A stretch of 61,793 nt of DNA, counting the filler, from Choristocarpus tenellus KU-1152 (taxonomy: Eukaryota; Protista; Phaeophyceae), in assembly GCA_964200185.2 (NCBI GenBank). It is 5 parts of 5 records of this genome, joined end to end, with 100 filler letters (N's around TTAATTAATTAA, not from the genome) between each part and the next. Parts side by side here need not be neighbours in the genome. Positions count along the whole stretch, not along the records: positions 1 to 20,844 come from CAXNAD020000373.1; 4 more parts are not named here. One strand, given 5' to 3'. Under the pieces are notes generated by a model. That model ran no database searches and was not told where the DNA came from. It was given only the letters and a program-made list of their open reading frames with translations. The position numbers and the translations under genes were made by a program. Shown piece by piece: positions 1,157-19,933 of the stretch. Each line of letters opens with the position of its first letter. The stretch's first letter is position 1.

Positions 1157-4100
1157 TTACGGAGAATCAAGACACTCATCATCTCCATCAGAGGGACCAT
1201 AAGCACCACTATGTATTCTACGTGGTTCTGTGGACTCCTCTGGCGGACTTAAACACCCAAAAGAAGATAAGATGATCACTAGTGAATTCAGCACCACTAT
1301 GGCACCCATGCAAATGTGAACCAAAATGATAATATAGGAGAACATCTGCTGACTAGCATCGTTTTCATCTGCCACGTCCACTTTGAGAATTAGAGCAACA
1401 AACATACTAGACAAAATCAAGAAGTTTCCTACCCTAGACAGCCACGTGTCCTTAAGTTTCCTGTAGGGGTTTAGTATTTCTGTGACCCACAGGAACCACA
1501 ATGCAAGGATGAACGTTATTGCTATTTGTGAAGCAGTGCCAGGATAGATAAATACAACTATCCCAGTAAGTACGACTCTGCGACCAAGATCCACCAACTC
1601 GAAGTAGAATCGGTCTGGCTTGTATTGCCGCCATAAATCCACAAAAGGCTGCAGGTCTGGATTTTCCTCTCTTGATCTCTTGCTCATCAAGGCTTCTCGG
1701 TTGGCAAAGAAGATATAGCCATACAGGAACGGAATACCCAGAGGGTAGACAAAGATCATAACTATGGCGTATACCTGGAAGACCTGGTGCCTAGCAGATG
1801 TACACTCCAGGCTGTAGTCAGCTCGTAAGTATGTCTTATCATCTTCAAGTTTCTCGCAGGCAAATGTTTGAAAAACCTTTGTTGAAGAAAATGAGAACAC
1901 AAAGAAGGATACTGCATATCCAACTGAGATGTGTCTCCGCCTTATTCTTATCACAGCTGCTTCTACAGCACCTTGATTTGTAATCATTGCAATCTTGTAG
2001 GTTATCCCCAGCATCAAGAGAATCGCAAGTGGTCCAAGTGTTGATATCAGCAGGCGATCGTAGAAGTTTGTGCTGACAGCACATCCAGCAGAGATTATTC
2101 GCATCCACCACGTAACATCAAAGTTGACAAAGTCGATTAATCTGAGAAATCTCTCATAGTGATCTGGGTACGAAGCGTTGGCAACCTCGGAAAACTGAAG
2201 GCCATAAAAGCAGTGGTTGAGAAGGTGAGGGTAATGGTTGGAAATAGCTTCAAATGGCATGTGACAACCAAAGTGTAAGAACAAAGCTGGGCAAGAACAA
2301 TACTAAAATTAGCTACCAACTTTATGGATGAGATGGATCCTGCAAGGTGGGCAAGAGTACATAGTAGATAAAATAAATATGAGAGTACAACAACACTTCA
2401 GAGCACTATAAATATGAGAGTACATAGTAGATAAGATAAAATTCAGAGTACCACTAACTGCCAACAGTCAACAAGGGTTTTGTCCAGAAATATGTACGCA
2501 ATCCCCACCAATCTTAACCAAAGGGTCGATACTTCCATTTCCCTTTTTCATATTGTTGCTCCTAGCATTGACATCTTAACCACATGGAGAGCTCGGTAAA
2601 TCCTGACCCTAGTCATTGACAGACCCTCCTGCCCACCGAGGGCGGATATTGGAGTGTTTGGGGTTGTGCTTCATATTCTGACCGCAAACTACAACCAACA
2701 AAAGTTGTATAGCGAAATATATATATCGTGCAATATCCCAGAACCTCGTCCCTCATATGTGATAGGCTAATAAGGTCAAATCCAATACCTCCATCAAAAT
2801 GAAAATTTGATGTGTGTTCCTCTTCCTACAGCACATTTTCTGCACATCGACAATGAACACCAAAATCTCTATACATTTTTCTCTCTTAAAGTTGTGTCCC
2901 TCATCTTTCTCTGCCGTTCACTTCAAGGACATTGTGCCAAATTCAACTCAATGTACTTCAGTTACGGTGGATAGGAGAATGAGGGTACAACCTGGTACCG
3001 ATGGACTCCTCCCGAACTATAACAGATGTGCAACTTCTGGACTTTCAGATAACACCATATACTTGAACAAGTCACATCTGTGATACATTACAAAGTGTAA
3101 GAGAGTATGACTACACTGTACATTCAGCCATGATAACACAAATCTTGTTCCTTGCAAGTCAAAATATTCTATCAACGCCCATCATCACCCCATGTATATT
3201 TGACCAAGATTCCTAACGCAAGAAAGCAAAATACATTTTTTGACCTCATAATAGTTGTGGTGCAGCATGGATGCAGTTATCTGTAGTGACAAGTCCTTTG
3301 GGGTTTTAAACTTTCCACTAATCTTGCATTGATAAGATGACCTCAGAATGAGAAGTGAGAAAGTACGTGCGCAGAGTGATGTGAAAGTCATGCTTCTGCA
3401 TGTCAAGTGCTGTTTCAGCAAAATCAGGCCAATCAAGCACCTCAAAATATTATATTGCCATAATGCAACAGCTCCTGTTAGAATGGCAAGAAGATCTACA
3501 CATAAGGGTTGGGAATGGAAATAACATCAAAATGAGGTTCGTTACAACAAATGAAGTGACCAGAAGAACGTGTCATATTCTATCGTTTTATATACATTCA
3601 TGTACAGCAAGAAGAACCAGTACAAATACGTAACTTGCCTGAGTAATAATTTGCCATGCGACCACCACAATTTTGAGACCTTGAAAAGATATCATCTCTT
3701 GAAACCGAGTAGAGAAGTCACCAGAAACCTTTCTCCACCTCCCACATGCAGTGACGAGATATATGGTGCCCACAACTATAACTGTAAGAATGAGTGCCAA
3801 GATAGAAACACCAATCCCAAGTGCCAATGATCTCCTGCTGTTGTCACACTCACTACAGGAGTATGACGGACCAGGAGCAAAGCCATCATCACAAACAGCG
3901 CAATCTGGAAATCCAGAGGAAGTGGAAAGTGGAGGTGAGCACGGACGGCACCAGGATATCTCAGCGGTTCTTGAGCGCTGAATTTCATTGGAGCTCAGCA
4001 ACGGATTATCCCGCACGAGACCATCCGAGGTAGCTAGAACGCTTTCAGGGGCAGTATTTTATTTGTAGGAGAGCTGCTCTATTTGAGAGCAATAAAGCTA

Positions 4101-7100
4101 TACCCATGCACACATGACACTCAAAATGTTACAAAAAGAGTTACATCTAGAGCAGGAAACAAAATGCCTTGAGGTTCACATTTGTTGGAAGTTACACCTG
4201 TGGGGGAAGAGGGCTCAACTTAGAGTGGATGCTATAACTACTGGGGTGTGAGGCTAGATCATTCCATAATTCAATTCTATCTCTCTTTAAAACATACACA
4301 ATAAAGTACTTGTCAAAGCAAAGCATGCTTCAAAAATCGAGCACACAAATTGGATCTAAACTCACATGCCCCTTTATAGCCCCCAGTGCAGATGGCAGCC
4401 TCAGCATTATTGTCACATGCTCCAAGTTGAAGACACTCATGTATCACACTCGTGGTGTTTGTTGCCCTCCAGTATCCTCTATCCAGCACAATTGTCTCGA
4501 TTGTATCACCGTATGCATTGCTACGTGTGTGCTCTGGTACAGGAGTACATTCAGGCCATCGGGTACCGTTTCTTGGGAAGCAGTCACTACACGCAGGGCA
4601 CTCGTGGCATACACTTTCATATGACCTGACCTGCAATGGGCATAGAAGGTCTCCTTGTCACTAGATTCCGCAGAACTAACCTCCTGCCAACAATTACTTA
4701 TGCTGCTGTAGAAAGCACACAATTATGGAGCGGTTTATTTGGTTCAGCTCTACTATAGCCATGTTCTGGTTACAATAGGTAGAATAAAGAACGGAATTAG
4801 ATTGCGGCATTTTGTTGTCAAGTGCAATGCAAGCTGTGATCCACCAAGACGTCACAGCAAGGTTATTCCTCGTACCTACAAAATACATGGGATTAGGGTT
4901 CAGATTGTGCTTATCTACTTCTTGACACAAAGGCACATACCTTTTCCGGAGTCACTTGGCTCCAGACCAGAAAAAATAGATACAGGTGTGGCGTTGTACA
5001 CTTAGGGAGGAATCCAAAGAATAATGCAAACATTTTTTCCGTACATACCAACTTCATGTCATCTTCCTCATTTCATTCAACTTAAGACATTTGAACCATT
5101 CCAATATGTGTAAGATGAAACAATCTTGCAACAATGAGTTTGAACCCATCCCAAAGTGAGGTACCCCCTCTGATTTTTAGTTATTATCCACTCCCTTAAC
5201 ACCGTTTATTTCTCCAGTCTAATTACCCTATATGCACGCAAAAAACCCGCGCATCTTAATATTCTTACATTTATGTAGGAGCAAAACCAATACCCCATAT
5301 ATATGAGTTATTAAAGGTGATCTCACATACTTCAAATCTTACCTGATTAGTAATAAGTGTCATATGGAAGCATAGTTCTAGAGTTCTGTAGGGTTAGAAA
5401 TTTTTTAATATTTCTCCAACGTTGGTACAACTCTCGTTTGTCCGCACCGATTTTACAATTTCCAGTACAATTGCCAGAAATTCAGCTTTGCAATGAAATT
5501 CCCATGCAGGTCTACAAGAAACACTGCATTGTTCATTCAACATCCACTCATATTGTCAGATATGGATTTGTACAACCAGGTCAGGGAGTATATAAACAAA
5601 TGACAATATGGCCCAATACCACCATTATTTTTCTGACATTTTTTTCAGACGACAGAGGGAGTGTTGCTGATGATAGATACAAATATCCACCTGTTCCTGT
5701 CTCGTGGTATCTGAGTCAAACCAACGGAGAGGTGGGCAAGGTTGGACGTAGATGATTCCTCTAAAAGGCGAAAGTAAGCCATCTTATACAACTGCAGAAA
5801 AACCCTTCACTCAATTGTGGTGTCACTTTGTGTGAAGAATGGGGATATCAATTTTATGGACACTAATGTGAACATTAAGCAATGAAATAGGGTGTATTGT
5901 ACAGGGTAAGAAATATGGCTTATAATGCAAAAGGGTCCAAAGCTACCCACCTCTCAATCGGTTTGACTCACCTACATACATGTGTCTAGCTCTTATACAG
6001 TCAAAATGCTGATGGGAATGCGCAAGGATAACCAATCGGAATCCCATTTCGAAATAAATTCATCCTTTTCAAAACGATTCTTAGAGCAGTTTTCATTATA
6101 GCCACTATGTCCCACTTGGACCAACAAGCACTAAACAACACTCAACATAAAACTGATTACCTGTGGTTGGATGTCCAGGTTATCCGAGCTCTCGACAAAT
6201 TTGATGTACATCCCTTGGTCACAATAGAGAGAGTTTCCAGTGAATGTGCTCAGCGTAACCCTCTTCAATGATGCGGCATCAGAGATAGCAGGACCCAAGG
6301 AGGCTATGTTATTCTCAAACATACAATGTTCTATGATTTCAACAACCCCTGCTTGTAGAATTGCCCCGCCGCTTCCACCTGGAGATTCATGCATGGTGCA
6401 ACCAAATGAGATTCCTTGTCGAGGGATTGGGTGCAACAACTGCCATTATTCCGCAGGAGTTACAAGAAACAATGCATCATAACAGGCGTATACTATTTGT
6501 CTAATGCCTTTACCAGACCATTATTGGTGTTGCAGAATTTCAAGATTTTATGCTTAGCTTAGACCTACTTAATCAAATTGCTATTGTTGAGCCACATAAT
6601 CCAAACGTAGAGGAGGAGTTTCCAGATTCAAATGCAACAGTATCTAGTCATTCTATCTTGACACGGGCTTTCTGTAACACAAGTCAACATTGACCGAGAG
6701 TCTCATTCACCTGCAGTATTGCCCGAGAATATGCACCCTCTGATTTCGCCAAATCCACCCAACGTAAGCAGACCTCCACCATCTAAGAAAGCAGTGTTGT
6801 CAATGAATTGGCAACCTGAATAGATTCCTGGCTTTATATCATTAGATCCATCATCGGTACTGAAAGCTCCAACAGAGTATGTCACCAAACCCCCTCCTGT
6901 TTCTGCACTGTTGGAGACGAAGCTGGTGTTTGCTATATTAAACACATTTGAATCTGTGCATGCCATTCCTCCGCCAGTGATTGCTGTGTTTTCATGGAAG
7001 GTTGCTTCTGACATGGTAAGATCCGAAGAGTATATCGCGACAGCCCCCCCGGTGGTATTCGCTCTGTTACCAGAAAATAATGTGTTGCCGCTCACCATCA

Positions 7101-10100
7101 GTTCTGAGTCTATTGCAAAAATGGCGCCACCATTCATACCTGCTTTGAACATAGAGTTATGAGAATATGTGCAGATTAACTGGAGAATCAGCATCCCTCA
7201 GGGGAAAACATGTGGGACATTGCATTGACCGCAGAGTAATAAGGAAGTAAAACTGGAAAACTAGACCATGTACAAGATCATTTGGTGCTAGCAGGTTATC
7301 ACATCTCTAACCCCAACAAAGAACAAATAGCTGTGACAAAACACTTCGACAAAAAAGTGCTATCAACTTACGACACCCGTACAAAGTGGCAAGGGAAGGT
7401 GTGAAATTGAAACTGTAGCAAAGTTTGGCAGTGTTGGTAACGATGATTTGACGACATAAAGAAATTAAATGAGAAATTTGTTTTCAATTAGCTGTTCAAA
7501 AATTTATCATTATGGTTCCCAAAGCATGTGTATACCACCATCCCAACAAGAACATGTGTTTCGATTATGACTATGTTGAACTATTTTCCTACCTCAAAAA
7601 GGGGAAGGAGAGCACAAACATATGTGTTTGATGATAAAGATAATCCTATTGCAAAGCGAACACGGAATGGTGCTTGACTAGAACGGACCACTACTTGAAT
7701 TGTTAGTCCTGGCCCTAACTATCATGGAATAGGAATATTCAATTTCTACTATCAAAACATTGCAACTTGCATGGTTCTGAGCCTCAGTCATGACTATGAT
7801 ACATCTCAGACATCTACCAGATATATTGAAAGTTGTATTGCTTATTGTCATGTAAAATCCTGGGCAAACACCCAATTCTTCCTCCTATGTTCTCTGCAGA
7901 ACAAGGAGGAAACAAATCGGATTACCTACAGCACTCGAGTTCAAGTTTGATGAGGTACATGCTACATTGTGATTATGGTGGAAACCTAGGGCAACAAGCT
8001 TACCAAATGCAGTCCCATTTTACATCGCTTTTAGAGTTATGAAAAATACATCCTGTGATCAAAATAATACGTTCATTGAGCAAAATCTACAAAACATGCA
8101 TGCATGATAATGCGGAACAATGACCTGGAGTGAAAACAAAACCAGTCAAAGATTGCATGCGCTTCCCAAGGACAAAAACAAAAGTATACTCTTGGCAGGT
8201 AACCTGGAAACCTTGCAAGAACAAGCAATATTTTCAATTTTAATACTTTCTAAGAGAATCCAACTATGTTTTTATGGCCTAGGAATGAGATTACTATAAC
8301 CCTATAATCACCTTTTATTCATTACTGTTTATACATATTACAAATGTGAATTATGTTTTCAATAGTTTTCTAGTGCTTTAAAGTTATCGCTGATTTTTCC
8401 CTTCAATATCATGGAGGCGATTGACTTTTCATAAGAAAGAAGTGACTCAAAGTATCTGGGGGGCGGGGCGGGGTCTACACCAGGTTATCTATTTGGTCCA
8501 TAGCCAGGAAAAGTGCAGTTACATTATCCATCCGACACATGCAACCAAATTACACAAGAATCGAGACGAAAAACTTGACCCCAAACGGACAGCAACCACT
8601 CCCCCCCCCCCAGATACTTTGTGTCGAGTACAAAGTAAACTATCTGTATCTTGGGATTGTGAAAGATTCAGTGTGATCGACTTCTTGTCATTCGAGGTAA
8701 TCAAGTGTAAAATAGTTCCCTCTTATTTGAAAGAGGTCGTTCTTGAGTAATCCAATGTGCATGAAATGCTACCGCCAATATTTCCCAGATAAAGAAATCA
8801 AATCCAAACTATAGCGTACAAAACATTTCTGACAAAATCGTATGACTGATTTCATTATGAGTCTTAGCTACGCACGTTGTGGCACATCCTCGCATATCAA
8901 ATGTTTAGGAGTAAACTCCTGCATTTGTTGATCCGAATCATATTTACCCTTTCATACTTCTGAGAGTGGTGTGGGATACGTATTCTGACAACACGATAGA
9001 ATATTGAGAAATCAACACTTGTGATTTCTATAAATTGTGGCGACAAGGGCAAATCATTGCGGATTGATTCAAATCTATGTGTTTGTTTGTACCTGGAAAC
9101 GAATTACTGTATTTTACAGCATTACTAGAAATTTAGATGTGTGCACAATTTCTTTTCAATCAAGCTTCAACAACTTAGATTTCCACACAATTATTCTTTC
9201 CAACAAAATATCAACAGAAGATTTGGACATGTAGGTACGACCAGATCACAATTGATTTGGACACAGTTCCTACGAATGATGTTTGCATGCAAATCAATCA
9301 GACTCTAAATATCGACAAATCAGAACATTTTGTACATCCTTCCTCACCATTTTGAGTTGTAACCTGTACATGATTTCTGGGTACACATGATCCGTACATC
9401 TTCACTGCTTCTTCAACCTTCACACACAAATATTGGTACATATACTTCTTGTTCTGATTTGTGACACATAAATGAGTGAATGAAGTGTGGAATGTTCCAT
9501 ATACTTAACTACAGGTCTTTTGACAATATTGGATCGATTTGAACACTGCGGTAAAGCCAATTGAAAAAAATGAGAAACTATTACATTACCACATGCTCCC
9601 TTCTTAAAGTTTCTATCCAAAATTGCGGCAAGAAGCAATGTGTGCCCTTCAAATTTTTGCAATACAACAGTATGATGAGAGAGTAGAGGTAAAGAAAAGA
9701 TCAAAAATAGTCTCATGTCCCTCTCTAAAAAGCGTGCACTGCTTTTCATAGATGTACATAGCTATTATTGCTAAAATTGTGTGAGATTTGGATAAGATTC
9801 CAAGGACCCCCTTCATCCCCTCTCCTCAAAAGCCATTATGAGAGAGTGCACAGAACAAGCATGTTTTGGAAGTTTAGGGATAGAAATGCAATGAGGAGTG
9901 ACTTCAGAAGGAATTGAAGGAATATATCCATTCTCAATCAAGGCATTGTTTGGACATCTTAACAGAATAGCTTGATGAAACAAAATGCTTCATTTGACCA
10001 TTTCCAACAAAGATATTTGAATCAACTCTCACCTGCAATGTTGCTGGAACAATGAAACTTGCCGCTCATTCCCACCTCAAAAATCACATCAAACAAGCCC

Positions 10101-13100
10101 AGACCTCCTCCATTGTCTGAAAAAAGTGTCGATTCAAGTATTCAAATCATCAGTTAAACTTCAGTTCTTGCCAACTCAATGTGTATCATGTGAGTCACGT
10201 TTGATCGTATAAGGATTGGAATATTGTGAAACGGTAGAAGAACGACTACCAAAGCAACAACGTGAAAGAGGGACCTGTCCAGTCTGACAATAGATTTGCA
10301 TGCTTACTAATTATTGCATAAAGTCTTGTAACGTTCGATAGTGGGCATGCAGAAAATGAACGTATTAGAGCTTATACATTAACGTTTCAATGAAAAGCCA
10401 CCCACTACTTAATAGGAATGAAACATCGGTAAAAGTAATAGTGCTTCGCAGAACAGGTGTAGACCCACAGCAATTAGGACTTCAGTAGCAAAGAGAAGGA
10501 TCACACAAATCAACGGACCACCATTGACAAGAAAATATTTTATTTTACCAACAACATACATCGTATCAAAATATCAAAAAGATGAGTGGTTTTCACCAGG
10601 CCAGGCAGTTTGCATCTTCAGTGCCAGTCGTTTGGCTGCGGACTGACCTGCAGACCAGTCACGATAAAGCATTTGATGGTCATGAATTCGGTTATGCTTA
10701 AACTCGATTGTATGTGGCCATGTTTAACCTTGGCAGGCACAGTAGAGTGGCGTTCAACAAGTGATCTGACTCGTTTACAATCGTCTATTGACATCCGAGT
10801 CAAATTATCTTAGAGGGTAGAGCCGCGTCCATTTGGGGACCAAAATCCAATGTTTCAATTTTGATGTAATTTTGGCTATCATGATTTGTCAGGAGATATC
10901 AATATCCTTGTTCTGGACACATCTTTTCATAACGTAGGCAATTTACCTACTCCGAAACATTTAGGAGTAGGTGACTGTCATTAAATATCCGTGGGAAACC
11001 AGGGCCCAAATGGACAAACAGGGAAAAACTCGCACCCTCTAAGATACTTTCAGGCTTGACGACTCGGTGACCCCAGTCATATCTTGACTGAACTTCTATC
11101 TTTGGCTGAACATGTTTCATTTTTGACAGTCAGGCTTGTCATGTCAAGGTCATATCTTCCTACTCACAATTCACCCTACATTGGACCATTTAGTTGTAGC
11201 TCTTCCAGAACCTCCGATTAGTAAACGGATGTTTGCATTGGATTCCTTGGAGTATTCTACTTTAAATAAATATGCCTTGCCTTTACTCAACACCATCAAT
11301 AAACCCATCCAACGCCACATTTTAGGCTACTCAGTCTAATTTGACCGCTCTTCCCAACCCACCCTACCGCTATCTTTTTTTGGTCCCTGACTGCTGTATG
11401 ACCACCATCCCCGATTCCAGCCAGGGCAATCTTTCCTAACAGCTGCTCAGTGTACTACCCCTAATACCACTCAGCGTTGACAGTGAGGTTGACTCCATAC
11501 TCCTCAACCTTCATGCTCCACTCTGTAGTTCTTCACTCCTCAATCACAATATAAACCCCAAAAATGAACCAAAGATCCAAGGGTTTTCCATTATTTCGGG
11601 ACCATTACTTAATTATTCCATTTTGTGATAGTGTAGAATATTCCAAGGAATCCAACACAAACTTCTGACCCCACCAATGAGCCTTTCCCATAACAAAAAA
11701 AACGCTATAGCTAAATTCGTGGCAAATAAGCTTATTCCTCAATATGCATGATATTTCATGACCTTAGTTTCAGCTAATGGTTTAAACGCTTTGTAAAACA
11801 AAAGCCGTTCATATTGATGCATATATGCAACATCGATCCTAACCCCTTTTCTCAGAACTGTACAACATCAGCACATAATTTAAATGTTCCAAGTATGTGG
11901 GGTAGCTTCCTCTAAGACATCAACCAGCACATAACTGGAGCAGTCTAAGGTATGTGAAAAATGCCACAACTCTTTTTTGCGGGCAATAACCACTGCTACT
12001 GGATTCTCCAGGAACTAGCAAAGTCGTGACCAGGTGCAATAGAGAACGCCATCCACCAAAAGAATGCTATTCATGCAGTCACTATCGTATACTGGCAATC
12101 TTTTCTCTTGTTCTAAACTCGTTCTCATGGTTAAAATGACTAAGGAATTCACGACCTGTCCTGATGCTGGCTCTTTAAAAACCCTTCCCATAGTACAATA
12201 TCCCCTCCTAGACGAACAGGGTCACTAGATACTGTTTCTCTCCACAAGAACCACAGTTTCAAGGGATGTGGAATATTACCTGCAATGTTATTTGTTAGGG
12301 ACAAGTTCCCAGTGATATTCAGTATGCCATCTAGGTAGATCCGAATGGCTCCTCCAAAATTGACTGTAAAAAAAGCATTAACAGGCAAGGTTTGTAATAT
12401 GTCAAATGAAAGATATCATTCAATGCATGAATGCAGTTTATATTCTGTGACCAGTGTTCTCTACAAAAAATTCTACGAAATCTGAAAAATATATACTCCA
12501 CACAATTTGAATTACATGTGTGATAATCACAAAACAGATTGTACTTATAGGTTTGCTCACCTGCTGAGAAAAAACAGTACCAAACCAACTAGAGGAAACT
12601 CAGCACACCATTGAAAACCTTAAAAAATATCAAAATTAAATATTTTTCGATCACCATGGTCCCACATTGAATCCATACCATTGGCTCAATGCAGTAGGAC
12701 CATGTACTTGGCGATCCCTCGTCTCTACTTTCTGTACACTTCTTCCAAAATTTCAATATATTGTAACCCTTAAGGGGTTGACAAGTAGACTTGAAATACA
12801 TAGCAGAGCTAAGCAAAAGATCAAGTAATCTTCTCCAGTTCATAGTACTGCACTCTTTCGCTACTACTGTTATTGTTAGGATATGCAAAGTTCAACCTGT
12901 AGCATTTTACAGCGAAAACCTTATATAAGATGCCTGTTGATTGTTGAGCATGCATGCCACGAACTTCAAGTGTTTACCAGTTTTTAAAAAAACAGTCCAT
13001 TTCACCTATAATAATCAAAAGCAAACAACATAGATGCAGCTCAATTCAACTTCTCACCCCTGAGCAAACAAATTAACATGTTGAACAAGAACTGGAACAA

Positions 13101-16100
13101 TGCACTTACCTGCACTGTTGTCATTAGATGTAGAATGGCCTCCAATAGTAAGATAGGTTGATTCTCGAATATATATTGCACCTCCATTTGATCCTGGAAT
13201 CATTTCAAGGTGATGCAGGAAAAAAAATCAAATATCCTTTTTTCATCAAGTTGACCCCGACTGACACAGATGGAAATTTGAAGTCTACAAATATTTCTAC
13301 AAAAATGGACATGGTTCTATATTAAACAAACAACGAGATGTGTAAAATATTAGTGAAGGGGTTCCTTGTGGGAATTGGATTTATTTATCCATCCTCCAAT
13401 AGTTAAATATCGCAAGAGTGAGAAAACATTGACAATGAAACTCAACTCAGACAGTCACTCCAGAAATAGCCTAGGTCTCGTGGCTGCCAAGAGAAAACAC
13501 ATCTACCAGCGACCTTTTGAACAATTTGAAAAAGAATTATGAAGCAAATTGCATTCTTATGAAGTTACGTTTAGATGGTACTGGGGACAGACAGGTAACA
13601 AACAAGAAACTACATTCAGACTTTAATAATTATCAGTCTAGAACGCATCTGCATATACACATTTTTCGGAGAGTAGAATAGTTGTACTGGAGAGCATCAG
13701 TTGAGGTGGGTGCAGCAGGACACACACCTCAGACAAAACAATTGGAAGCGCGTAAAAGAGTTGCAAATACCAAATCTGCATTGAAAAGTGATAACAACCA
13801 GAAATCAGCCAACCCCAGTTCCATTCCGTCCTTATTTGTAGATCAACATTGATACATACATTTTGCTCAGATATTAAACACAAACACATGCCCTTTCCTG
13901 CATTGTTATTAGGAAAGATGGAAATGCCGTCAAAGTTGAGAATGAATGATGTGGAAGCATAAACACTCCTTAAGGACTATCTGGAAATGTGCCAAAGAGC
14001 TACAGGAGGAGATTCGAAATTAGTATCTACTTCAGAACACATCTCTACAATGGAATTCAAAATATGTAGCCAGAATGTGGAGATGGTGAAGGAGGTTCGT
14101 TAGGGGGGTTAGGTTCGTGCACAAATCCTTGAACAGTACAGATGTGTCCAAACCTTTTCAATATTGAAGCAATGAATGATATAGACTGTACATGAGTCAC
14201 TGAGGAAGCAGTCAAGAATTGAAACCGTAAAAGGGAAAGACATACATCAGTAAACCTCTACAACACGTTGAATTGCAACTGTAAGAACATCCCCAAAAAT
14301 CTGGTCATGCCATACCCTTCAATTGGTTCTGCACATAAAGTGTAAATTATCTGGTTCAACTTCAATATTGGTCAATCGTAACCGAATCTACGTGTATACT
14401 TTCGAGGAGGAGAGTAGAATAGTAGCACAGGAAGGTATCAATTGAGTTGGGTGTGGTGTTATAGTGGTTGAGTTGTGGATGTCCAACAGATTTCTAGTAA
14501 CCAATTCTGTACTTCAAAGTAGACATAATCACAGTTCACCCAACTTTTGTTGAACTCCATGCTGAACTGAACGAAGAAATTGACATAATAAATTTTCTCA
14601 TTGATGATAGACAGAACACATGGACTTACCTGCGCTATTATTGTAAAAGGTGGAATTGCCTTCCATGATGAGCATGGAATGGATCCGAGAATATATAGCC
14701 CCTCCAGTATCAGCTGGAATTATGTTGAAGTGATACACAGATCGGATTCGAAATTCAGTTCCACCTCTCAGAAAATAGAACCCATACTTTAGGACAAGAA
14801 TGTGGAGATGGGTACAGAATAGGTAAATATGTTCCTATTGAGGATTAGGTTCATTAAGCTACTCCAGAATAGTTCAGAAGTGTCCCAAGATCACCAGCAT
14901 TGAGCCGATGGATGAAGTTCAGTGTATACAGGTCACTCCACAAAAGGTAGGAGACTCAAAACATTCAAACAGAACTTCATATACCAGCATCCGTTCAAAC
15001 AAAGAACATGCCATTACTTTAAGTTGGTGTTGAAGCAAAGCTAAAATCTATTATCTTAACCAAAATACATTATCTTAACCATAATGTAAATCATTCTCGA
15101 CCCAATCTTCATATACATTTCGAGAAAGGGAGTTAAAGAGTAGGTTTGGAGGGTATCATCTGAGTTGCATGAGATATTACTATGGTCGAGTTGCGAATAT
15201 CTAGCAGATTTCTCATATCAAATTCTTCATTTGAGAGGTGGCATCTATATAGTCTACTGCGCTCGTTTCACTTCATGCATAGCTCTACAAAGACATTGGC
15301 AATAGCAATGGCAATGGTAGGAAGAAGTAGGTAGCGGGTAGTTCGAATCAAGGAACCGAATTTAGTGGATTGGCATTGCCTCTATATACACCCCAGAAGA
15401 AATACACAGTACATGACGGTATGGGAGATGTACTACGGTTGGAAAAGGTAAAGGTAGAATACCCACTGCCAAAGAGCAAAAATGTGGTATATTCTCTCAT
15501 CCCTCATTCAAAGGTTAAATGCAAAAAGGATTCCAGAGTTCTATACATGCAGTAAAGAGCCTCTAAAGGATCCTTCATAAGAGCAAAACAGTTATCTCTG
15601 GTGTGGAACTACATCGTCCTCACACTCACAAGCGGTGTTGCTAACAAAGGTGGCATTGCCTTTGGAATAGATGGAGCTATTTTGTTCTGCATACATAGCT
15701 CCTCCATCATCATCTGCAATTAAGAGAAATGATTTCAGTGGAAGGTGTGCAATCGATTTTTCTGTTGGACTGTTGCCATCAGAAATTATTGTTTAGGGCG
15801 TATTCACATGAAAAAACAAGTTTATCGATATTGAGGCAGTGAATTAATCTTGAGGTTTTCAGGTCACTTCAGAAACAGCATGAGACTTGAAAGTGTCTAA
15901 GGGATATGCATACAGCAATACGCGTTTCAACAAGTTAAATTGCAACATAAAAAAATAGTTCAAAAATTCTGTTTCTGCCTTTGCTTTCAATTGGTGCTGG
16001 AAGAAAGTCTGAACTGATTCAAGATTTATATGACAATCATGATCTGAACTACGTTTTTTTTTTCAAGGAGATCAAAACGTAGGACTGGAGGGCAACAAAC

Positions 16101-19100
16101 AAGGTGGGTGTGGAGTTACAATGGTGGAGTTACGATATTTAAGCTGAGCAGTGGTCAGCATTTTTGTAGTATAGAGAGAATCTCAACATAGTTTACTCAC
16201 ACTGATTCCACACCATGCTCAGCCATGCAAAGACATTGGCAATGGTGATGGAAATAGTAGAAAGAAAGAGGTAGAGAATATTTCAATAGGACAGAAATAT
16301 GATGTATCTCATGCTGTTCAGCAGATAACAAATATCAATGAACATCTATGTTACGCTTTAGACTAGTGCATCAGAGTAGAAAAGATACATTATGGCTGGG
16401 ATCACCTTCTATACTGGACTAAGCATGCTTTGTGTGCAACCACATCGACCTTGCACTCACTTGCAGCATTTCTTGCGAAGGCGACAGTGCCTTCAGAGAC
16501 AATTGTCGAAATATTCGCTGCAGCTATAGCTCCTCCATCTATCTCTGTGAGCATTTTAGAAATATTGGAGCAGAGAATATTGAGTCAGCTTTGATGGGTA
16601 TTCTAGATACCACTCCTTCGAGTTTTCACATACTGGAAATAAGATCAATAAAATGCAACTCAGATTAGAACTACTACAACAAAGTATCCTACATCCTTCA
16701 GAACTTCAATACATTTCTTGTACTCTACTAAATCAACCCCTCGAATATCCTTCAACCTACTTGCTGTGTTACTTTCAAAGGAGAACACCCCTGGCATGCT
16801 CAGATTGCTTAACTCGGAGATTTGAATAGCTCCTCCACTTGAACCTGCCAAATTTGAAGAGACGGACCTTACCATTAATAGTGTAGATATATTTTCTGTG
16901 GAATGGTGTTCATTATTGGAGCATGTCATGCAAAACGAGACCATAAATGCCGTATGGTATGGCAAGGATAATGCTAACATCTGCAGAAAATTTCTCAACT
17001 ATTATACAGTTCAACAATTGCAACAAATTCACGTCGTCGTTATAGTTTGGATCAGTCCACAATGCATCATATCGGATTAGCAACTGGTGGCATAAGTGCA
17101 CAGAAGTGGTGGTCAGCTTTGAGGACGAGTTTCAAGGATGTGTACCTACATGTCAATGTGGTGCTGATGCAACAAGCTGCAGTACACAGAAGAACTAAGC
17201 AGAGGATCAACCATTTCGCTCTTTGACCTTTTTGGGCAGTGTTCTCTTACTCTTTTGTGATTATTTTGTTATGCAACATTTGACTTATAGCATTGAATAG
17301 TGAATTGTGGATTGTTAGGCCTTATCAAATATACCCCCTCATCTGTTAAACATGCATGCCATTAGTATACCTGACTCACTAGATGACACTGAGACAGTCT
17401 CCTATTCCACCGATATTGAGAACAGATGGCATACATGCCACTGACTCTAATTTCATTTCCTGCTGGGCAAGGATATTTTTCAATTGATGAAAGACACAAC
17501 TCACGGACTTACCAGCACTGTTGCCATAAAAGGTGGAAATGCCTCCGAAGTTGAGAATTGTTGAGACATTCGCAAATACTGCTCCTCCATATCCGTCTGC
17601 AATTGTGTTGAGGTGTTGTAGGAGTGTATTTCAACTTATAGTTTTGATGCCTTAGGAAACAGACCTTACACTCTTCGGACAGATTGCGGAGAAGGGCAAA
17701 GAATAGGTGAGTTTCTCATGTAAATTATGTTGAGCCTTCTATTCCTGATTAGATCAAATTTGTCCGAAATTCATTAATATTGAGACTAAGAATTCAGAAA
17801 CAGCTTAGCACTTGAGACTGATAAAGAGAATGGTATATATCAGCAACCTTTTTTTTGAGTTTGAATCATAGCTTTAAAAATTATTTCAAAAATTCCGATC
17901 ATATCATTGCTTCGATCGATGCAAAAACGTTGTGTAAATCAACTATTCCAATTGGAAAGATGTAAGTCCTCACTGTATCTGTTCTAGTTTTTCTGAAGAG
18001 GGAAGTGGTCAATGTAAATTAGAGGCGCCCATAGTTTCACTTGAAAGATGCCTGTATAAATGTGTATAATTCAGCTTTTTCTAGAAATACGTATAGGATA
18101 TACGCTGAAATGTGTTGCAAAGTTTCAAGCAGTAGAGAAATCAGTCATCTAAAGTCAAACTTAGAGTTTCATCAATTGAAATATGGGTAAATTACAAAAT
18201 ATAGAAAAATTGCCTTGATTTAAAACGGCCAAACTGGATACCTCTCTCATACTTTGGCTCAGTAAAACATTTACATTTGAGGGCATGTCTAGTGGTGGGT
18301 GTAGAGTGAAAACGGCTGAGTTGGAGAAGTCTAACTGATTAAGAGTAGTCAACTCTGAATTGTAGGGTCAACAGCAACACAGTTCATCCACACTTGTTCC
18401 ATTCAATGCTGAACTGTAGAAGGACTTTGGCAACATTAGTTTTGCAAAGGGAAAAAATTTTGGATCAACTTTAACTATTGGAGGGGCCTTCTACTATCAC
18501 CATTGAAGTGAGGTAGAATTGTAAGACTGGACTGTGAGGCAGGGGAATCTGTAGACCGAAAGAGATCTGAAAGTGTGCTGGCCATGCAGCTTCTTCTTGG
18601 AGACGAATGATCCCTAGTTTTGGGTGAGAGTTGCAAGTTTTTCTCACTCTATACCTAGGATTATATTCCGCCAACAGCTTCAGTAGCAGATGCAAGTAAC
18701 GGGAGAATGTTCCACATGAAGCCTCCTATGCCGTCGCTCTTTTTACGGGGAAGTATGTGAGAGCCAGAACAGGGTCTGTCAAGAGGGTTCTTTAATGAAA
18801 TGGGTAGTGGTTTCAAGGCAACACAGAGAGGAATCAATTACCCTTCCCCCTCTAAATACCCACAAAGAAAGCTGGGCAATCTCACTACAGGTAATATTAA
18901 TGTCAAACTACCATGGAAAATGCGCTAAGAATGGGTGAACAAATTCCTCACTGACACTACCATGTCTAACCGCATAACTAGTCCATTTTGAACAAGTAAT
19001 GTGAGTAGATGTATGGGCTGTAATACCCGTGGTATGTCGGGTAATCGAGTACTTTATCATCGATGATCATGTAAACTGAACGCATAGTTGATACATACGT

Positions 19101-19933
19101 CCTTCATCTCACTCCCGAAGCCGTCGACTTCGACATCGACACCATCCAATTCTAAATTTCTGTGTACTTGAATTACGTCAACTTCAATAAACAATATTTC
19201 AAATGTATGGCGTGATCAAGATTCATTCTTAGACGCTACACATACTTCCCCACCAAAGGCGTTGGCTACTGAGTGTAAAGTGTTGAGTATTGGTAATCAT
19301 ATCCTGGATAGATTAATGTCGTGAGACTGAGAACTGCCGCTAGGTGCTTTCATTTTAGAATTTCAGGACAGAGCCAAAAAAAAATCATCTTCCTAGAAGC
19401 CAAGACTTCTTCCTATCTTCACCTGCATGGTTATTTCTCCAACTTGACTCGCCCTTAAACGTGATATTTGTTGACGCACTAGATATCGCTCCGCCATTGT
19501 CCCTACGCATATTTTGTTCGAATGAGCAGCTTTCCACTGTCATACTCGAGTCCGAGGCATAAATCGCCCCACCCGACCCCGTAGAATTTCCGTTCGACAA
19601 AGTAAGGTCGAAAAGGTGCAATTCAGACCCAGACACAGAAAAGAGTTGATGGACGTTGCCTCCATCAACCACCGATGTTGAATCGCCGCTGCCGCAAATG
19701 CTAAGTTTGACACCGTCAAGAACGACAATCGTAAGGTCAATTACAATATGCCCTCGCCAGATCACCACAAAGGTTTCTTGACTCGAGTTTGTCAAATTTT
19801 GAACCAATAGGTTGGCGTCATCTGCATCCTCTACGATGAAGTCTGAGGGAGTCGAGCACAGCGTACCCAGTCCCCTCTCTGCTGTCAGCAGGAGTAAGGC
19901 AAAAATTGCGAACAAGTGAATCACCAAAGACAT
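1157..19933 (-). CDS. Polymorphic-membrane-protein-like (GGA[I/V]...FxxN beta-helix) cell-surface protein with Cys-rich stalk and multi-pass TM C-terminus, ~1132 aa, 14 exons
   Basis: Exons: 19423-19933, 17513-17596, 16761-16844, 16461-16544, 15630-15713, 14630-14713, 13110-13193, 12280-12363, 10033-10116, 6711-7139, 6161-6378, 4366-4630, 3639-3904, 1157-2194. Total 3399 nt, open and phase-consistent; AG acceptors and GT donors except one GC donor. Signal peptide MSLVIHLFAIFALLLL; many GGAI/FxxN repeats; Cys-rich region (CHECPACSDC...GYWR...CAVCDDGF); TM region with WQIITQF, FQTFAC, YLRADYSLEC and YFELVDLGRR motifs. Confidence 0.85.
7818..7893 (-). pseudogene. Decayed repeat exon (76 nt, frameshifted) of the Pmp-like gene
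   Basis: ctgcag|AG AAC ATA GGA GGA AGA ATT has the same start spacing as the live exons (ENIGGRI). It ends ...ATG ACA ATA AGC AAT ACA ACT TTC AAT ATA TCT G|gtagat (MTISNTTFNISG) in a different frame. Confidence 0.6.
8444..8625 (+). mobile_element. MITE family B (~180 bp), complete copy
   Basis: TIRs GACTCAAAGTATCTGGGGG ... CCCCCAGATACTTTGTGTC; flanks aagt/gagt; interior matches the partial copy at 38657-38761. Confidence 0.8.
8780..9500 (+). repeat. Old dispersed AT-rich repeat (family D), colinear with 45540-46560; boundaries approximate
   Basis: Shared anchors in the same order: aaatcaaatcc..gcgtacaaa, ttctgagagtggtgtggga, aattactgtatttt, gtacatcttcac..cttcacayacaaatatt. Confidence 0.6.
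10797..11055 (+). mobile_element. MITE family A copy (intronic)
   Basis: gagtcaaattatcttagagggta ... caccctctaagatacttt; internal hairpin cctactcc..ggagtagg. Confidence 0.85.
13110..18540 (-). repeat. Tandemly duplicated exon+intron units (~0.7-1.1 kb period) of the Pmp-like gene
   Basis: Introns share homologous blocks (e.g. 14435-14560, 15150-15300, 16090-16240, 18280-18430). The segments at 13981-14270, 14714-14990 and 17597-17850 also resemble each other (gaatgtggagatgg, gaataggt, tgtcc..aatattga). Confidence 0.75.
13898..13980 (-). pseudogene. Decayed repeat exon (83 nt; stop, 1-nt deletion, donor GT>GA)
   Basis: ttccag|AT AGT CCT TAA GGA... The 3' frame reads VYASTSFILNFDGISIFPNNNAG, close to live exon 17513-17596 (VFANVSTILNFGGISTFYGNSAG), and it is followed by GAAAGG instead of GTAAG. 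Confidence 0.8.

Follow-up and report, generated by a model that had tools for sequence, protein, structure and literature searches.

Results

The window analyzed here is a stretch of 61,793 nucleotides (nt) from the genome of Choristocarpus tenellus KU-1152 (GCA_964200185.2), an early-branching brown alga (Discosporangiales), and its first part, positions 1 to 20,844 (CAXNAD020000373.1), carries a minus-strand gene for a membrane protein built on Pmp-type repeats, each of them one rung of a predicted beta-helix. Two NCBI proteins bearing the name Choristocarpus tenellus agree with this genome at 100%. In this C. tenellus subfamily each middle rung is encoded by a single symmetric exon, here called a cassette. 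The gene extends from 19933 to 1157 and comprises 14 exons (3399 nt) that encode 1132 amino acids; checked exon by exon, the phases close and there is no internal stop. The product consists of a signal peptide, about 16 rungs, a cysteine-rich stalk and a multi-pass membrane domain.

Exon 1 (19423..19933, minus strand like all exons that follow; 511 nt, phase 0-1) encodes the signal peptide, the N-cap and the first two Pmp rungs, and it ends at a rung position identical to that of the cassettes. Eight cassettes of 84 nt and phase 1-1, each encoding one rung, come next: a (17513..17596), b (16761..16844), c (16461..16544), d (15630..15713), whose final base is T, e (14630..14713), g (13110..13193), which begins with GA, h (12280..12363) and i (10033..10116), the most divergent type. 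The preliminary description of this locus had reported eight separate 84-nt exons with phase-1 introns on both sides, and all eight proved exact, with AG and GT flanks and with translations that agree, split codons included; only one of them lies inside an open reading frame of at least 100 amino acids, so that the ORF track does miss most of the array, as had been stated. A profile scan added a dead cassette, f (13898..13981), which contains a stop codon and has lost both acceptor and donor, and which is intact in three other contigs (C4280, C5304 and C13063). Exon 10 (6711..7139; 429 nt, phase 1-1) holds five rungs in a single exon, with the same boundary register as the cassettes, and exon 11 (6161..6378; 218 nt, phase 1-0) encodes the last rung and the C-cap. 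The cysteine-rich stalk is encoded by exon 12 (4366..4630; 265 nt, phase 0-1), a further cysteine-rich part and the first membrane helix by exon 13 (3639..3904; 266 nt, phase 1-0), and the remaining multi-pass membrane domain, a short tail and the stop codon by exon 14 (1157..2194; 1038 nt). The intron after exon 13 is of the GC-AG type, with its GC donor at 3638.

Turnover of the cassettes

A genome-wide search for 84-nt phase-1 exons, one of the checks proposed in the preliminary description, returned 40 strict-pattern matches on 11 contigs, against one in the reversed control, in an assembly of 164 Mb and 27,310 contigs. About 50 cassettes were recognized genome-wide; they sort into the types a to i, and these types recur in one order. 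At least five intact close paralogs were identified by the membrane exon (76-81%), and paralogs differ in cassette content and carry dead cassettes, such as b, whose acceptor is lost in C1520 and C18221. The introns that separate the cassettes are related by descent (56-66% over up to 1 kb; for example, 13615-14585 and 14355-15301 agree at 60% over 996 columns), which shows that units of exon plus intron were duplicated in tandem.

Contig C83 aligns collinearly with the window (about 75%), yet it contains an extra block and has 13 intact cassettes against eight in the window, besides two copies of f without a normal donor. On the 5' side the window resembles the first block of C83, on the 3' side the second; the e-f-g-b-c junction is also present in C5304, and f-g-b-c in C21153, and these matches suggest that the window lost one block. 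In C1520 a dead b is joined straight to an a/g-like cassette, c to f being missing. Within C83, the two blocks agree at 100% along an 800-bp tract (4900-5700) but at 64-94% on either side of it, the mark of gene conversion. Whole blocks have thus been gained or deleted in frame, splice-site mutations remove single rungs, and conversion homogenizes the blocks. Any module, it had been proposed, can be added, lost or swapped in frame: gain and loss among paralogs, with differing module number, bear out the first two, but free swapping is not supported, given that order is mostly kept and that a test for mosaicism within exons was negative (p=0.58), though two cassettes look chimeric by halves. 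Because cassette order is largely conserved, the process is one of block gain and loss rather than of free shuffling.

Some further observations concern the same arrays. Two e-type cassettes (G000:C5304:611-694 and C13063:99-182) are identical (99% over 312 nt), and the two contigs are possibly two blocks of one gene whose assembly was broken by a second conversion tract. A more distant paralog, L029 (G000:C8370, 4331-1154), shares the boundary register and has a 168-nt exon of two rungs, an intermediate state. The cassette of C83 at 6067, at first taken for dead, has a GT three bases earlier that gives an 81-nt exon.

Selection at single rung positions

Codon site models in our own implementation of GY94, applied to 47 intact cassettes, favoured a class under positive selection (55.7 for M1a against M2a and 48.9 for M8a against M8, with omega of 4.2-4.6 and p of about 1e-12), and rung codons 9 and 10 were assigned to it with a posterior of 1.00; in seven null simulations that included a recombination breakpoint, few as these runs are, the value never exceeded 6.9. 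Three disjoint clades were each significant, the types c/d pointing to codon 9, b/h/i to codons 1 and 10, and a/e/f/g to codons 2 and 9. A tree-free count gave 27.5 replacements at codons 9-10 against 10.7 expected from the flanking introns (2.6-fold), and 13 against 50 at the scaffold sites; on the stricter baseline of the synonymous rate, the excess at codons 9-10 was twofold (p=0.024, corrected for 26 adjacent pairs). Among 49 cassettes, 38 different dipeptides occupy these two codons. Change thus runs faster than neutral at rung codons 9-10 and, with less clarity, at 1-2, and purifying selection acts on the scaffold of GG, G, F, N and A. The preliminary description had held that the residues after GGA[I/V/M] differ in every module; the per-site tests do place positive selection on the residues following the GGA-I strand, and the statement holds best for codons 9-10, but codon 7 is tyrosine in three of the eight cassettes.

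Taken over whole exons, pN/pS was 0.79 for 19 independent sister pairs of cassettes, and the cassette value for the window and C83 alone was 0.54; by comparison, the membrane exon and the majority of the other exons had an omega of about 0.4-0.5, and the control exons as a whole ranged from 0.3 to 1.0. Exon 13 (3639-3904), which encodes the membrane-proximal cysteine-rich part, likewise had a high omega, 0.8-1.0, when compared with three paralogs.

Predicted fold and membrane domain

That the ectodomain is a Pmp-type beta-helix, as first proposed, agrees with several lines of evidence. GG and N are near-invariant in 50 cassettes, the GGA(I/L/V) and FxxN motifs are paired at rung spacing, and, among the six large exons searched with Pfam, exons 1 and 10 match Chlam_PMP above the cut-off. 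The ectodomain of an Ectocarpus homolog, P0166, is predicted to fold as a right-handed beta-helix (predicted local distance difference test score of 85); among solved folds it comes closest to polysaccharide lyases and tailspikes, which are weak matches (template modelling, or TM, score up to 0.42, about 10% identity). In the predicted fold of this homolog, codons 9-10 form the coil directly after the strand that follows GGA-x, and their predicted secondary structure would thus place them in an exposed turn. By the rung scheme of PMC10715098, codons 9-10 correspond to turn T5 and codons 1-2 to T3/beta-2b, and the introns of the window interrupt the rung at T3, where chlamydial Pmps insert variable loops. 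The same work places the T3 loops and the beta3-beta1 loops on a common face, and the selected sites of the window protein may likewise form one surface.

The membrane part is confidently predicted to be helical and multi-pass, which upholds the anchoring that the earlier idea of a surface receptor entails; the C-terminus, helical as it is, contains neither the autotransporter beta-barrel nor the Pmp middle domain. Its match to PF06011 (TRP-like), in exon 14, is weak (18.3 bits, below the curated cut-off of 28.5); similarly weak PF06011 matches occur in 23 of 60 homologs, and there is a weak match to DUF7630 too. The membrane part also resembles Atlas clusters from haptophytes, cnidarians and giant viruses, in which its partners are ephrin-receptor-like, LRR or TIR domains, a likeness that fits a receptor-like module without proving one.

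Homologs in other algae

Members of the family occur widely among brown algae, kelps included, under automatic names only, and the family's layout of signal peptide, Pmp rungs, cysteine-rich stalk and conserved membrane domain is the one described above for the window gene. Proteins named in databases as 'polymorphic outer membrane protein G/I family' or 'probable extracellular nuclease' in Ectocarpus have the same architecture, with 40-47% identity in the membrane domain. Unlike the window gene, four of the five genes of other brown algal subfamilies that were readable place their 13-22 rungs in just one or two long exons: P0014 and P0021 of Ectocarpus have 13 rungs in one exon, and single open frames hold 18 motifs in Ascophyllum and 22 in E. 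siliculosus. In Discosporangium the rungs fall into several multi-rung stretches, and one more gene, from Ectocarpus, could not be mapped.

One subfamily of Ectocarpus sp. 12 (CAM9292348.1 and relatives) is also split rung by rung, into exons of 81-87 nt and phase 1-1, but its introns interrupt the GG motif, at a distance of four codons from the site used in the window, and no longer resemble one another. A displaced intron position speaks for a second origin of the array in Ectocarpus, which the tree does not prove: the two groups separate in it, but the approximately unbiased (AU) test does not reject a single clade (p=0.135). A search of the C. tenellus genome for the Ectocarpus register stayed at chance level (18 matches against 21), and a pattern scan of metagenomes gave six matches, of which three lie in uninterrupted repeat ORFs and the other three are due to chance. 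An apparent frameshift in one Ectocarpus cassette turned out to be two compensating alignment gaps, the exon being open. Intronless homologs were found on two metagenome contigs (L047, 5001-8657; L058, 448-3948); the former, which groups within the brown algal sequences of the tree, has an ammonium transporter gene and a GIY-YIG gene as neighbours, a setting reminiscent of an algal giant virus. Many brown algal members (P0267, P0270, P0273, P0292 and others) combine Notch/LNR (PF00066) with the Pmp repeats.

Intronic elements

A dispersed element of about 256 bp with terminal inverted repeats (10797..11052), resembling a miniature inverted-repeat transposable element, is intronic and lies outside the coding system; a first look found about 4,900 candidates in the genome, with several copies within the cassette array of C83. 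Three intronic inverted-repeat pairs of 31-41 nt (5707-5975, 8444-8625 and 11228-11665) are probably old non-autonomous elements. A remnant at 18261..18445 is homologous to the introns between cassettes; its intron part is significant, whereas a tenth, dead exon proposed near 18.5 kb was not significant against shuffles and was discarded.

Discussion

The array described here works like the LRR-ROCO and NB-ARC-TPR genes of brown algae (PMC3341825; PMC11378527) and the 90-bp-exon LRR genes of Tetrahymena (PMC6564038), but it belongs to none of them. With the former it shares the lineage, one repeat per symmetric exon, family turnover, a repeat number that varies among paralogs and positive selection at a few positions of the repeat. 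The differences are equally clear: the rung exon has 84 nt and phase 1, against 72 nt and phase 2 for the LRR exon of ROCO genes; the product is a secreted ectodomain on a multi-pass membrane protein, and a Pfam search of the six large exons revealed no LRR, TPR, ROC-COR or NB-ARC domain; and repeat order, instead of being scrambled beyond alignment, is largely kept in the window family, whose paralogs remain collinear. Exon shuffling in Ectocarpus had been reported as restricted to TPR and LRR genes (Zambounis 2012; PMC3341825). The Tetrahymena genes likewise consist of tandem symmetric exons of equal length derived by duplication of exon plus intron units, for which unequal crossover has been proposed (PMC6564038); they encode LRRs, have phase 2 and number thousands, whereas C. 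tenellus has some 50 cassettes in a handful of genes. The chlamydial and trichomonad Pmps (PF02415) share the GGA(I/L/V) and FxxN motifs, the rungs of 27-28 residues and the right-handed beta-helix, but the window protein, besides lacking the autotransporter parts of the chlamydial ones, has tight T3 turns in place of long loops and draws its variation from exon cassettes. As the preliminary description had supposed, no account of Pmp rung cassettes was found in the open-access literature, subscription papers being outside the search, and the text of the Phaeoexplorer preprint contains neither 'polymorphic' nor 'exon shuffling'.

The interpretation that we favour, by a modest measure, is that of a multi-pass Pmp-repeat protein of the cell surface, in which changes to the gene itself diversify the beta-helix that faces the ligand. 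The block changes would come from unequal crossing-over among homologous introns, the stacked turns of codons 9-10 would form a variable ridge along the helix, this ridge might bind a changing outside partner, be it a microbe, a virus or a non-self cell, and the membrane domain could relay a signal or anchor the contact. The ligand, the location and a role in defence or immunity are put forward by analogy. The earlier interpretation as a whole is partly supported.

Several points speak against this reading. Cassette type order is conserved among paralogs, and the rung-by-rung subfamily of Ectocarpus keeps both number and order in four copies, at 68% identity. Most sites look neutral rather than adaptive, with about 67% of the codons fitting an omega of 1, and the codon models were self-implemented, with scaled fixed branch lengths and 27 codons. 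Over the part covered, a second DNA sample (X2) showed no cassette change, its differences from the window being some two substitutions and an intronic deletion of 18 nt; another sequencing run (X1) is identical to the window and probably the one from which it derives. The assembly is fragmented, alleles and paralogs are not always separable, and neither Foldseek nor VIA-align found a solved structural relative of the membrane domain, whose signalling role is thus putative.

The neutral majority of codons is also what would be expected if the repeats had expanded mechanically under relaxed constraint, an intron having fallen at the rung boundary of a spacer or adhesin of unimportant length, in which gain and loss are tolerated and surface sites drift. 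Dead cassettes are indeed common, the replacement rate of the whole cassette equals that of the introns (ratio 0.99) and the control exons have fairly high omega as well; we nevertheless regard this explanation as unlikely, since codons 9-10 exceed neutral expectation 2.0-2.6 fold on two baselines and since codon 9, codon 10 or both were picked in each of the three disjoint clades. Slightly harder still to credit is a protein of cell-cell or cell-wall adhesion or recognition, serving gametes, self, substrate or polysaccharide sensing, whose paralogs diversified for endogenous partners and not for defence. Pmps are adhesins in Chlamydia and trichomonads (PMC10715098), a stable cassette order fits fixed subfunctions, and the nearest solved folds are polysaccharide-binding beta-helices, but those fold matches are the weak ones noted above, and repeated positive selection, turnover and conversion would be more typical of antagonistic coevolution. 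Isoform diversity arising mainly from per-cell skipping of cassettes, as in Dscam or in ROCO genes, whose LRR exons are alternatively spliced (Teng 2024; PMC11378527), is very improbable: 35 of the 36 possible skip junctions leave the frame open, but joining d (15713-15630) to g (13193-13110) creates TGA, so that the earlier claim that any module can be skipped in frame holds with one exception, the splice sites of the window cassettes are mostly strong and canonical, and the one intact rung exon that each of two annotated models omits in the Ectocarpus rung-by-rung subfamily is a weak hint of skipping that may reflect prediction errors.

A wider proposal, by which these genes would be a third class of variable receptors at the cell surface, with two independent origins and with both genomic and skipping diversity, sensing non-self outside the cell and so complementing the intracellular ROCO-LRR and NB-ARC-TPR proteins, appears doubtful at present. 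The array itself nonetheless adds a third exon-per-repeat scaffold to LRR and TPR, known candidates for brown algal immunity, and one which, given its signal peptide and membrane domain, would face the outside of the cell. Rung codons 9-10 offer a specific, testable surface in a large and poorly described brown algal family, a counterpart of which exists in Ectocarpus, where CRISPR and RNA data are at hand, and this one family spans every stage from repeats in a single exon to a live array of cassettes that includes dead units.

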